Virus record (IMG/VR): IMGVR_UViG_3300036766_002289
Span: 1 to 64,000 of that record
Strand: one strand, 5' to 3'
Length of the DNA stretch: 64,000 nucleotides
Every line of letters begins with the position of its first letter. Within the stretch, counting starts at the first letter, position 1. Below, piece after piece: positions 24,412 through 26,043 of the stretch. The notes under the pieces are model-generated. The model worked only from the letters and a program-made list of their open reading frames with translations, was not told the origin of the DNA and made no database searches. Made by a program: the position numbers and the translations under genes.

Positions 24412-24501
24412 AATTTTCATCACAATAAATTAAATCCGTTGAAAAACGGATTTTTTCGTTTACATACTCAGAAATTGTAGTATCATACAGAAGTTCAATA
24501 A

Positions 24502-24531
24502 CTTGGACAGGCAACTGTCCCCAATAAGGAG
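24502..24531 (+). promoter_or_regulatory. Y-like hairpin abutting the Ro60 Shine-Dalgarno (putative autoregulatory operator)
   Basis: CTTGGAC-aggcaact-GTCCCCAA followed after 1 nt by AAGGAG; promoter TTTACA-N16-TATCAT at 24459-24486. Confidence 0.7.
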
Positions 24532-24540
24532 AATTTAAAA

Positions 24541-26043
24541 ATGGCTACCAATGAAACTGATACGCGGCTTGCTATCTTAAACACTCTGTTAACTACCCCA
24601 CACCGTAAGTTGGATCAAGTTTATCCAATTCACGCTGAAATGATTAAGCAAGACCCATTGTTCTATGGTCGTTTGGGTGCGTGGTATAACGACACTGGCG
24701 ATGTGCGTGACCATAAGGAAATGTTCATCATCAATATGTGCCTTTCTGATTTTGAAGGCCATAGGGATGCTGGCCTAGCCATGCTCCGTGAAATGCCTCC
24801 TTATCAGCTTGGTCGTGTCGTAGACTTTATTCACGGTCGTAAGGATACCAAGAAGTCTAAGGTTAAGAAGGGCGAGACTCCGCAAACTGTAGTCGAGAAC
24901 TATGGCTTATTTAAGAACATTCCGCGTTCCGTTAAGACGGAAGTGGTTCGTTATCTTCGTGAGCGTGAAGCGGAACCTGAATGGTTCGATTCTTGTGCAG
25001 TTACCGCTCGTAAGTATTTGAAGCGTTTATACGCTCTTATGCATATTTCCCCCAATGAGCGTGCGCAGAAGATTCTCTTTGAAGATTTGCCTCCAGAAGA
25101 TTCTAAGCTGTTCGCAGTGAAGGAACTCTTTAAGGCTAAGACGCCAGCGGAACAAGCTAAGACGATCATGGCACATAAGATTCCTTACCGTATTGCTTCT
25201 ACGGTAGTGTCTGCTATGACTCCGACTGTTCTTTTGGCACTTATTGAAGTTATGTCCGATCAGGAGTTAATCAATAACCTTGGTTCTCTCCGTAAGCGTG
25301 GTGCGTTTGAGAATAACGACCTTAAGGCTTTGATCGAAAAGAAGCTTGAAAAGGCAAAGACTGGCAAGCGAGTTTCTGCACTCAAGGCTTCTGAAGCTGT
25401 GAAGTCGGCTGGCGTCGATGAATCTACTGTCAAGGCATTGGAAGCTGTAGCTGACGCTCAGCTTAAGAAGAAGGGTCGTATTAAGCGTTCGACTGCCTTG
25501 TTGATTGACAAGAGCGGTTCCATGAACCAGGCTATTGAGTTAGGTAAGCAGATTGGCGCAACCATTTCTGCTATCATGGATGCCGATTTGTTTGTGTATG
25601 CTTTCGACACGATGGCGTATCCAATCAAGTCCCAAGGCACAGACCTGGCGTCTTGGGACAAGGCGTTAAGGGGTATTAATGCTGGTGGTGGTACCGCTTG
25701 TGGTGTTGCTCTTGAGTATATGATCCGTAATAAGCAACTTGCGGAAAATATCATCGTCATCACTGATGAAGGTGAAAATGGTACTCCAGCATTCGTGCCG
25801 ACTTTGAAGAAGTATATAGCAGAATTGAAGACTACGCCTTCTGTCTGCTTTGTTAAGACCACAGGTGCGTCTAATTTGCTTGAGACGCAAATGCAGCGTG
25901 AAGGTATGAATTGCGATGCGTGGCAGTTCAGTGGGGATTATTACAGCCTGCCTAACTTAATCCCTTACCTTTCCAAACCATCGAAGGTTGATCTTTTGAT
26001 GGAAATTATGTGTTACGAAATGCCTGTCCGCAAGACGGCATAA
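24541..26043 (+). CDS. Ro60/Rsr-like TROVE + vWA domain protein
   Basis: 500 aa; helical N-terminal region ([21 protein letters not shown]) and C-terminal vWA with MIDAS DKSGS, GGT, ITDEGEN; Y-like RNAs adjacent. Confidence 0.8.

Follow-up and report, generated by a model that had tools for sequence, protein, structure and literature searches.

How might a phage that encodes both a Ro60-like protein and a set of Y-like small RNAs keep the one in proportion to the other? A mechanism for balancing Ro60 against Y RNA has not been established in cells or in viruses, and the question is raised here by a 64,000-nucleotide stretch of DNA, positions 1 to 64,000 of IMG/VR virus record IMGVR_UViG_3300036766_002289 (hereafter the window). 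In its 5′ leader, the gene for a Ro60-like protein carries a 23-nt hairpin directly upstream of the Shine–Dalgarno (SD) sequence, and we infer that this hairpin is a minimal cis copy of the helix that the protein recognizes in Y-like RNAs encoded upstream. That the Ro60-like protein represses its own translation through this mimicry of its RNA ligand is the best explanation and, in our estimate, about as likely as not. Comparison across related genomes lends this functional reading strong support, with binding by the protein and the consequent repression as its putative steps. The elements of the leader, all on the + strand, are as follows.

24432–24453 (+), terminator-like hairpin of the intrinsic kind, a 9-bp stem followed by a T run, which ends the upstream gene (23779–24411)
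24459–24486 (+), sigma70-like promoter TTTACA-16-TATCAT, 10 of 12 matches
24500–24510 (+), strand B with its preceding AA, AA-CTTGGACAG, in which the CTTGGACAG arm occupies 24502–24510
24511–24514 (+), GCAA tetraloop (GNRA type) that closes the helix
24515–24524 (+), strand A, CTGTCCCCAA, that is CTGTCC-CC-AA, with C24521 and C24522 bulged
24526–24531 (+), SD sequence AAGGAG, separated from the helix by 1 nt (T) and from the ATG at 24541 by a 9-nt spacer
24541–26043 (+), Ro60-like gene, 500 aa, with a HEAT-repeat ring and a vWA domain bearing the MIDAS motif DKSGS

The first-pass annotation had described this hairpin as the ninth copy of a repeated helix, set between a promoter and the AAGGAG SD and lacking a tail carried by the other copies, and both the sequence itself and motif counts bear this out. 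Specifically, the + strand between 21154 and 24522 holds nine CTTRGAC arms and nine GTCYCC arms, together with eight CTTACAARC tails (21185–23435), none of which follows the leader copy. The leader hairpin is the sole member of the nine without the CTTACAAAC tail, and the other eight are confined to a cluster of Y-like and tRNA-like RNAs at 21.1–23.5 kb. The composite pattern AACTTRGAC-N4-30-GTCYCC is matched five times, as compared with 0.01 expected from shuffles, and AACTTRGAC alone eight times against 1.08 expected. A covariance model trained solely on the leader hairpins of 11 genomes recovers the cluster's four hairpin-type copies, with E between 4e-9 and 0.02, and over the whole 64 kb it finds nothing better than E = 0.3 beyond the hairpin-type copies.

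With respect to structure, the leader stem consists of six Watson–Crick base pairs (24505–24510 with 24515–24520), and beyond the CC bulge the helix adds the pairs T24503–A24524 and T24504–A24523 (U–A in RNA). The 6-bp stem is present in both the minimum free energy (MFE) and the centroid structures from RNAfold, with the SD essentially free. Among the leaders no second helix and no SD-sequestering alternative fold is conserved: RNAalifold retains the 6-bp hairpin alone, and an AAGUUC/GAAUUU pairing in the MFE structure of the window is not shared by the other leaders. Since the hairpin leaves the SD unpaired and no alternative fold is conserved, any regulation would need a factor acting in trans. 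Given the promoter-like site at 24459–24486, the hairpin falls downstream of the predicted −10 element and ahead of the SD; transcription is predicted to start at ~24493, 7–9 nt 5′ of AACUUGG, which gives a predicted 5′ untranslated region (UTR) of ~47 nt. With a terminator-like hairpin and a promoter-like site both upstream, the Ro60-like gene looks like a transcription unit of its own. Promoter-like sites also stand 5′ of the hairpin in L001, L021, L003 and L013, at a distance of ~118 nt in the last two. In the genomes that carry it close to the gene, the hairpin is 11–23 nt from the start codon, which leaves no space for a promoter in between, and the promoter-like sites lie upstream. As to other generic roles, the hairpin was ruled out as a terminator, as it has no U run on its 3′ side, and a stem of 6–8 bp is unlikely to be an RNase III site.

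Upstream regions were recovered for 24 phage-type homologues, and conservation in this position, which the first-pass annotation had put forward as a check, was indeed found: a tail-less hairpin is present in 13 of 16 related megaphage loci (67–94% protein identity). It lies 11–23 nt before the start codon in the window and in L003/L006 (94% identity), L015 (84%), L016 (79%), L018 and L019 (75%), L022 (74%), L020 (73%), L021, L219 and L001 (72%), and, in a variant form, L220 (67%). The SD begins 0–9 nt 3′ of the hairpin in 12 of the 13 genomes, L013 being the exception; six genomes have a gap of 0–2 nt, and elsewhere it widens to as much as 9 nt. AACUUGGA and GUCCCCAA are fixed in the leader hairpins, and the flanks and the SD spacer vary. 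In the alignment of 11 leaders (A2), AACU-GGA and GUCC are invariant, and the signature unpaired nucleotides (AAC, the CC bulge and AA) stay while the flanks diverge. The loop is GAAA, GGAA or GCAA in 10 of the 11 leaders, and all loops but one are of the GNRA type; L219 has GAGA. Pairing is likewise maintained, with 95% of the cells paired as compared with 85% in shuffles, the observed value being reached in none of 500 shuffles; the two apical stem pairs change on both sides, and a third pair alternates between C–G and U–G.

The leader hairpin is further tied to the Y-like modules with which it shares its helix. Both topologies of the bulged helix occur within 21116–23490 (+), closed either by the ends of the RNA or by a GNRA loop. 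In the Y-type topology (three copies), strand A (GUCYCC-NAA) is followed by one side of a 7–8 bp second helix, CUUACAAAC, a loop and the other side of that helix, after which strand B (AACUURGAC) and a U run complete the RNA; the three are 70–74 nt long, are closed by their own ends and fold far better than shuffles (z = −3.9 to −4.9). The hairpin-type topology (four copies) is a circular permutation in which strand B, a GNRA-type loop, strand A and the tail follow one another, enclosed by the second helix. The counterpart of leader strand B is the AACUURGAC 3′ strand of Y-like RNAs, and that of strand A is the 5′ strand of the Y-type RNAs, the one contacted by Ro60 in vertebrate Y RNA. The GNRA-closed end of the leader helix is the end that carries the RNA termini in true Y-type RNAs. 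In ~75 hairpin-type modules of the phage loci, the tail is always present, 8–10 nt downstream. The only tail-less hairpin in each genome is the copy before the Ro60-like gene, where the SD takes the place of the tail, and such a copy precedes no other gene in any locus. A joint departure from the signature is seen in L220: its Y modules now read ACAUGGA, found 18 times, and UCCUC, found 10 times, and both changes recur in the leader hairpin of that genome, ACAUGGAUAGG ... CCUAUCCUCGAC, which directly abuts AGGAGG. Y modules of L016, L018 and L020 also contain the ACUAGGA variant seen in several leaders.

Consistent with a role as a recognition site, the helix resembles that bound by known Ro60 proteins. 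Xenopus Ro60 contacts the GGUCCGA strand of Y RNA, which pairs with 3′ residues to give a helix with a bulge (PMC4201824), and the bulged C9 is the primary determinant of Ro60 binding, retained in bacteria (PMC4030889). The phage strand A follows the layout of the vertebrate site GGUC-C-GA, namely a helix, bulged C and G–U or A–U pairs; the repeated helix comprises 4–6 bp, bulged C's and then A–U or G–U pairs. By comparison of sequence, the leader helix GUCC-CC-AA/UU-GGAC likewise combines a bulged-C helix with a GGUCCGA-like strand, and strand A reads GUCC-CC-GA or GYRC-CC-GA in one cluster copy (copy 5 below) and in cellular RNAs, as compared with GUCC-CC-AA in the leader. It is because of this resemblance and the genomic linkage that we take the helix to be the site of the Ro60-like protein. 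The leader element is a 23-nt tetraloop hairpin rather than an RNA of 80–130 nt with an end-closed helix and a large internal loop, and it has neither the tRNA-like D and T arms nor the GNCGAAN0-1G motif near the 5′ end that mark YrlA. Judged from these features it is a copy of the putative binding site, not a Y RNA.

The Ro60-like identity of the downstream gene, also asserted in the first-pass annotation, is backed by its predicted fold. The AF2 model of the 500-aa protein (pLDDT 83) was compared with the PDB by Foldseek, and the top 11 matches were full-length human, Xenopus, Deinococcus and phage Ro60/Rsr/TROVE chains (TM 0.58–0.65, ~500–560 aligned columns), at only 15–18% identity to solved Ro60s. 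The MIDAS residues D323, S325 and S327 are invariant among 21 homologues. Sequence models detect the relationship less readily: in Pfam the window protein has no TROVE (PF05731) match and only sub-threshold VWA matches, and three relatives score 28.7, 27.1 and 26.1 bits against vWA_Ro60 (PF25045), where the cut-off of 27.7 leaves one above and two just below. The window protein alone finds the TROVE protein of Thermus phage phiLo at E = 5.5e-5; with a profile of the 21-homologue family that match has E = 7e-4, and human RO60 is reached at E = 1e-4. Taken together, the modelled structure and these matches indicate that the gene product is a divergent Ro60. The family is large (>2,700 matches at E < 1e-5), with members in megaphage contigs of ~0.37–0.6 Mb and in >560 cellular genomes, mostly Planctomycetota, some of them on chromosome-sized contigs.

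In terms of mechanism, the gene would be driven by its own sigma70-type promoter, producing an mRNA whose short 5′ UTR ends with the helix 1 nt before the SD, the bulged-C strand running directly into it. When Y-like RNAs are in excess, each offering the helix together with the second helix and the CUUACAAAC tail, they would hold the protein. A surplus of protein over free Y-like RNA would instead bind the leader helix, and a ring of ~55 kDa placed against the SD would exclude the 30S subunit, such that translation falls; leader-bound protein might also promote decay of the mRNA. The leader copy would plausibly be the weaker binder because it lacks the second helix and the tail, and it would then be occupied only once the Y-like RNAs are saturated. 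Such control would be Nomura-type feedback, the message itself imitating the primary RNA ligand of the protein that it encodes. Two features expected of such an operator are found here: the retrieval of cluster copies by the leader covariance model and the shared signatures, including those of L220, identify a cis copy of the presumed primary ligand in the protein's own mRNA, and in 12 genomes this copy lies at the ribosome-binding site, with the SD starting 0–9 nt after it, the exception being L013 with its HNH insertion.

This type of arrangement has close analogues. Threonyl-tRNA synthetase of E. coli is autoregulated at translation by mimics of the tRNA anticodon arm located just 5′ of the SD in the thrS operator, and ribosomal-protein operons (L1, S8, L20, S15 and others) are autogenously controlled through mimicry of rRNA according to the Nomura model. 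Like thrS, the present leader has a ligand-mimic hairpin immediately 5′ of the SD, where excess free protein would compete with the 30S subunit and abundant ligand would titrate it; the protein and RNA families are different, and a single 23-nt hairpin would stand in place of a multi-domain operator. As in the ribosomal-protein leaders, synthesis of a ribonucleoprotein component would be matched to its partner RNA via a reduced copy of the binding site, whereas the RNA mimicked here is a small non-coding RNA of the phage and the mimic is a paralogue of RNA-gene modules rather than a product of convergence. Phages also use translational operators, such as the hairpin with a bulged base bound by the MS2 and PP7 coat proteins and the targets of T4 RegA, gp32 and gp43. 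These resemble the present element in that a short, bulged phage hairpin near a ribosome-binding site is paired with a phage protein as the proposed repressor. The usual target in the MS2/PP7 and T4 cases is another gene or the start codon, unlike the arrangement proposed here, in which the protein would act on its own mRNA through a hairpin 5′ of the SD.

Several observations weigh against direct self-repression through this hairpin. The element is dispensable: in L016 the CC bulge is gone from the leader hairpin, in L017 (76% identity) the hairpin is degenerate, and in L023 (69% identity) it is absent and another mobile-looking open reading frame (ORF) abuts the gene, and the leader hairpin was not found in phage homologues at ≤64% identity or at any of 80 cellular loci. 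In L013 (89% identity) an intact hairpin is parted from the gene by an inserted 281-aa HNH-like ORF, and where the distance from hairpin to SD reaches 9 nt, steric occlusion becomes less certain. A small Cys-rich ORF (CxxC ... CSEHH) runs through the hairpin in three genomes (L003:4786-4998, L013:3000-3203 and L015:3869-3994), so that elongating ribosomes would melt it there; in L003 and L015 this ORF stops 3–7 nt before the Ro60-like ATG. For these three genomes translational coupling, rather than direct occlusion of the SD, would have to be the target. (In the window, the place of this ORF is taken by the terminator and the promoter.) With respect to the link to the Y modules, leader hairpins often differ hardly at all from one of the Y modules in their own genome (L019 and L016 are examples), so some of the compensatory changes may stem from gene conversion and not from independent mutation, and the joint change in L220 represents a single lineage. 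The second helix and tail missing from the leader copy are conserved in every other module and are possibly needed for binding. Finally, a 77-aa protein encoded nearby is a possible additional partner of the helix, or a rival binder.

These points bear unequally on the alternatives. It is conceivable, if unlikely, that the Ro60-like protein does bind the leader helix with a different outcome, such as protection or targeted decay of the mRNA, cis loading of freshly synthesized protein, or activation of translation. The evidence for a recognition element shared with the Y-like RNAs applies equally to this reading, and a role at the level of the transcript would suit both L013, which retains its hairpin although the inserted gene parts it from the Ro60-like SD, and L003 and L015, where the hairpin is inside an upstream ORF. 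Moreover, Y RNAs tether Ro60 to 3′–5′ exonucleases in bacteria; complexes of Y RNA, Ro60 and PNPase have been described from D. radiodurans and from Thermus phage phiLo (PMC4201824, PMC12135203). Nonetheless, a helix within 0–9 nt of the SD in all but one genome has the geometry expected for occlusion, there is no SD-sequestering structure for binding to open, and the HNH insertion of L013 may be recent. An improbable alternative assigns the helix, in Y-like RNAs and leader alike, to another factor, either the 77-aa protein or an RNA-processing enzyme, with the leader copy coupling Ro60-like expression to that factor. The ORF for the 77-aa protein does accompany the Y-like RNAs and the Ro60-like gene in all 25 phage-type loci and in 47 of the 80 cellular loci, and the modules sit in polycistronic tRNA-like transcripts that require processing. 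However, the helix has the canonical layout of a Ro60 site, with bulged C's beside G–U/A–U pairs, and tail-less copies are found before the Ro60-like gene only. The 77-aa protein is modelled by AF2 as a beta-beta-alpha-beta-beta fold, for which no significant structural match was obtained (best E = 0.09, the top matches being ubiquitin-like or PB1 domains), and nothing in this points to RNA binding.

That the hairpin acts independently of any protein, as an mRNA-stabilizing stem or a processing site, or that it is a relic of a Y-like module kept by gene conversion, is a reading to which we attach a low probability. Its loss, displacement or degradation in several relatives and its near-identity to paralogous modules of the same genome would be natural for a relic, and the whole Y-like RNA found just 5′ of the gene in cellular relatives makes a remnant plausible. 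A relic would not be expected to have lost the tail and the second helix cleanly in every genome with AAC, the CC bulge and AA kept as an invariant signature, and a generic stabilizing stem needs neither the signature nucleotides nor the parallel change seen in L220; the predicted start 7–20 nt upstream also means that the stem is not 5′-terminal, as classical stabilizers are. Scarcely credible, finally, is a DNA-level operator, an inverted repeat through which a transcription factor would control the Ro60-like promoter. The repeat is 15 nt past the predicted −10 element, a typical position for a repressor site, but it is asymmetric, with the CC insertion on one arm conserved; within the cluster the same arms are found 4 to ~110 nt apart, with either arm first, an arrangement that is sensible only as RNA pairing; G–U pairs are tolerated; and in L003 and L013 the promoter-like site is ~118 nt away.

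In the protein tree, whose backbone lacks resolution partly through the long branch of L012, L017 pairs with L020 and L023 with L220, and the partners of each pair differ in hairpin presence. A scan of IMG/VR with the pattern ACTTGGA-N7-12-GTCCCCAA returned nearly all chance matches; five form the stem, three of which were already known. A scan of metagenomes with a single protein query gave at least two loci.

Placed against what is known, translational control of a Ro60-family protein by a minimal Y-RNA helix in its own leader, as part of the Y-like RNA class described here, is a combined proposal that we put forward tentatively. Feedback through RNA mimicry is a classical mechanism, and phage Ro60 proteins and Y-like RNAs are themselves already known, from mycobacteriophages (PMC4201824), Thermus phage phiLo (PMC12135203) and jumbo phages (PMC7824862). 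As in the Ro60/Rsr systems generally (vertebrate Ro60–Y RNA, D. radiodurans Rsr–Yrn1, Salmonella Rsr–YrlA/YrlB, mycobacteriophage YrlA and phiLo phiRo60–Yrl1/2), a ring of TROVE/HEAT type with a vWA domain is accompanied by small RNAs within a few kb on the same strand, some with tRNA-like domains. Unlike known bacterial Y RNAs, the phage RNAs have no GNCGAA motif and have a conserved CUUACAAAC tail, and, unlike known Ro60 systems, many phage copies are circularly permuted, closed by GNRA loops and inserted in tRNA-like scaffolds. In the literature searched, we found no report of a copy of the Ro60 site in the leader of a Ro60 mRNA; nor was there anything relevant on autoregulation of Ro60 or Rsr, in a search to which reviews of Ro60 and bacterial Y RNA did not belong. 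On these comparisons the combination of a conserved, covarying copy of the Ro60 binding site with the SD of a Ro60 mRNA appears to be new. The class of Y-like RNAs, defined by the helix GYYC-CC-RA/UU-GRRC and the CUUACAAAC tail and found in megaphages of ~0.6 Mb, Planctomycetota and other bacteria, also appears to be new, as do its permuted hairpin modules; it is in neither Rfam nor the literature searched, a statement made without comparison to the 355 published YrlA candidates.

Were the proposal true, the hairpin would be the first Ro60 site to regulate an mRNA in cis, and would show, from a natural example, how small a Ro60 binding element can be. The 23-nt hairpin and its 13 natural variants constitute a directly testable operator and a ready mutational series for recognition by this branch of Ro60. 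That the largest known phages have up to a dozen or more Y-like copies, in permuted and tRNA-embedded forms, beside a divergent Ro60 is also relevant to the presence of modules for RNA quality control or repair in giant phages that have large tRNA sets. The window itself has 35 tRNA genes and a large translation-related gene set for a phage.

The remaining eight copies of the helix make up the cluster, as follows.

21150–21193 (+), copy 1, hairpin-type module with tail CTTACAAGC in a tRNA-like RNA; covariance model 29.5 bits; the fold has an enclosing second helix
21249–21318 (+), copy 2, Y-type small RNA with a T run at its end; −20.8 kcal/mol, z = −4.9, none of 200 shuffles folding as well
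21398–21442 (+), copy 3, hairpin-type module and tail; covariance model 37.3 bits
21633–21677 (+), copy 4, hairpin-type module and tail; covariance model 39.4 bits, z = −4.0
22949–23078 (+), copy 5, tRNA-like RNA with the module in its D loop; module 22979–23010, tail 23018–23026; covariance model 17.6 bits
23086–23156 (+), copy 6, Y-type small RNA with a T run at its end; −16.1 kcal/mol, z = −3.9
23181–23279 (+), copy 7, strand A and tail before and overlapping tRNA-Leu(UAG)
23293–23480 (+), copy 8, consisting of strand B, a tRNA-like domain (23312–23404), strand A, tail, loop and a second strand B

Three of these RNAs have the end-closed helix with internal loop typical of Y RNA, copy 2 for example running from strand A through the second helix, tail, loop and second helix to strand B and the T run. 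At least two of the hairpin-type copies are inserted in tRNA-like scaffolds, one of them in a D loop. This is copy 5, which matches the Rfam tRNA model over its full length (43 bits) and has a 62-nt D-loop insertion made up of the Ro-type hairpin and CTTACAAAC; its anticodon loop, AACCUAA, is without U33, and it is therefore probably not a decoding tRNA. In copy 8, the upstream and the downstream strand B are both possible partners of strand A (23407–23419), with a YrlA-like or a Y-type fold as the outcome, and the part at 23407–23480 folds at −20.9 kcal/mol (z = −4.8). ARAGORN reports a 93-nt ‘tRNA-???’ with a two-base anticodon at 23312–23404 (+); as copy 8 has its strand B on one side of this stretch and its strand A on the other, the stretch is not a tRNA but a tRNA-like domain within a YrlA-like RNA. 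Although some of the cluster RNAs have tRNA-like parts, their motif is GUCYCCNAA and not GNCGAA. Rfam scans of the window, one using the gathering threshold and one admitting matches up to E = 10, gave only tRNA matches and sub-threshold chance matches to unrelated families, and at the gathering threshold eight cellular loci gave no family match for their Y-like RNAs.

Cellular homologues were sampled at 80 loci (L024–L103), and Y-like RNAs with a nearly invariant CUUACAAAC flank the Ro60-like gene in Planctomycetota, Chloroflexota and other phyla. Over these loci CTTACAA occurs 85 times on the strand of the gene (+) as compared with five times on the other. It is always within RNAs that consist of GYRC-CC-GA-C, a second helix, CUUACAAAC, a tRNA-like arm or hairpin, the second helix and RACUUG-YRC, and the helix is present in its ends-closed form only. 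In 49 of the 80 loci no more than 400 nt separate the tail from the gene downstream, and the 3′ strand of the RNA ends a median of 97 nt, and at minimum 27 nt, before the gene start. Because cellular relatives normally have a complete Y-like RNA just upstream, a Ro-type helix before this gene is the ancestral arrangement, of which the phage clade keeps the helix only. Representative cellular RNAs are given below.

L048:4750-4840, cellular Y-like RNA
L027:2370-2470, cellular Y-like RNA

One cellular locus has a further feature. In L058, within a tRNA array and just 5′ of the Y-like RNA and the Ro60-like gene, an 83-nt stretch (L058:2599-2681, +) matches positions 1077–1160 of bacterial 23S rRNA (54 bits, E = 2e-13). 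This 510-kb sequence was binned as Armatimonadota and may be a megaphage.

Among the neighbouring genes, the 77-aa ORF considered above is upstream of the Y-like RNAs and of the Ro60-like gene, on the same strand, and several relatives have mobile-looking endonuclease ORFs (HNH-like or LAGLIDADG-like) inserted directly next to the Ro60-like gene, on its upstream or its downstream side.

22630–22863 (+), 77-aa ORF with an invariant C-terminus, RPEAVFG
L030:2293-2517, L042:2552-2746 and others, relatives of the 77-aa ORF
L013:3151-3996, L018:5475-5900 (−), L023:3357-4007 and 5492-6355 (−), endonuclease-like ORFs

From its AF2 model, the 77-aa protein may have a ubiquitin-like (beta-grasp) fold. 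Genes for Prok-JAB (30301–30753 in the window) and ThiF-like proteins are located a few kb downstream in most phage loci, which suggests a set of ubiquitin-like, E1 and JAB genes tied to the Ro60-like module. A homologue of ribosome recycling factor is encoded two genes after the Ro60-like gene (26463–26999, +; Pfam RRF E = 5e-23). The gene immediately upstream of the leader (23779–24411, +) encodes 210 aa with a long Gln-rich C-terminal stretch (QQTQQQQQQGQNQQSQGQQQQSGQQ) and has no confident family match.

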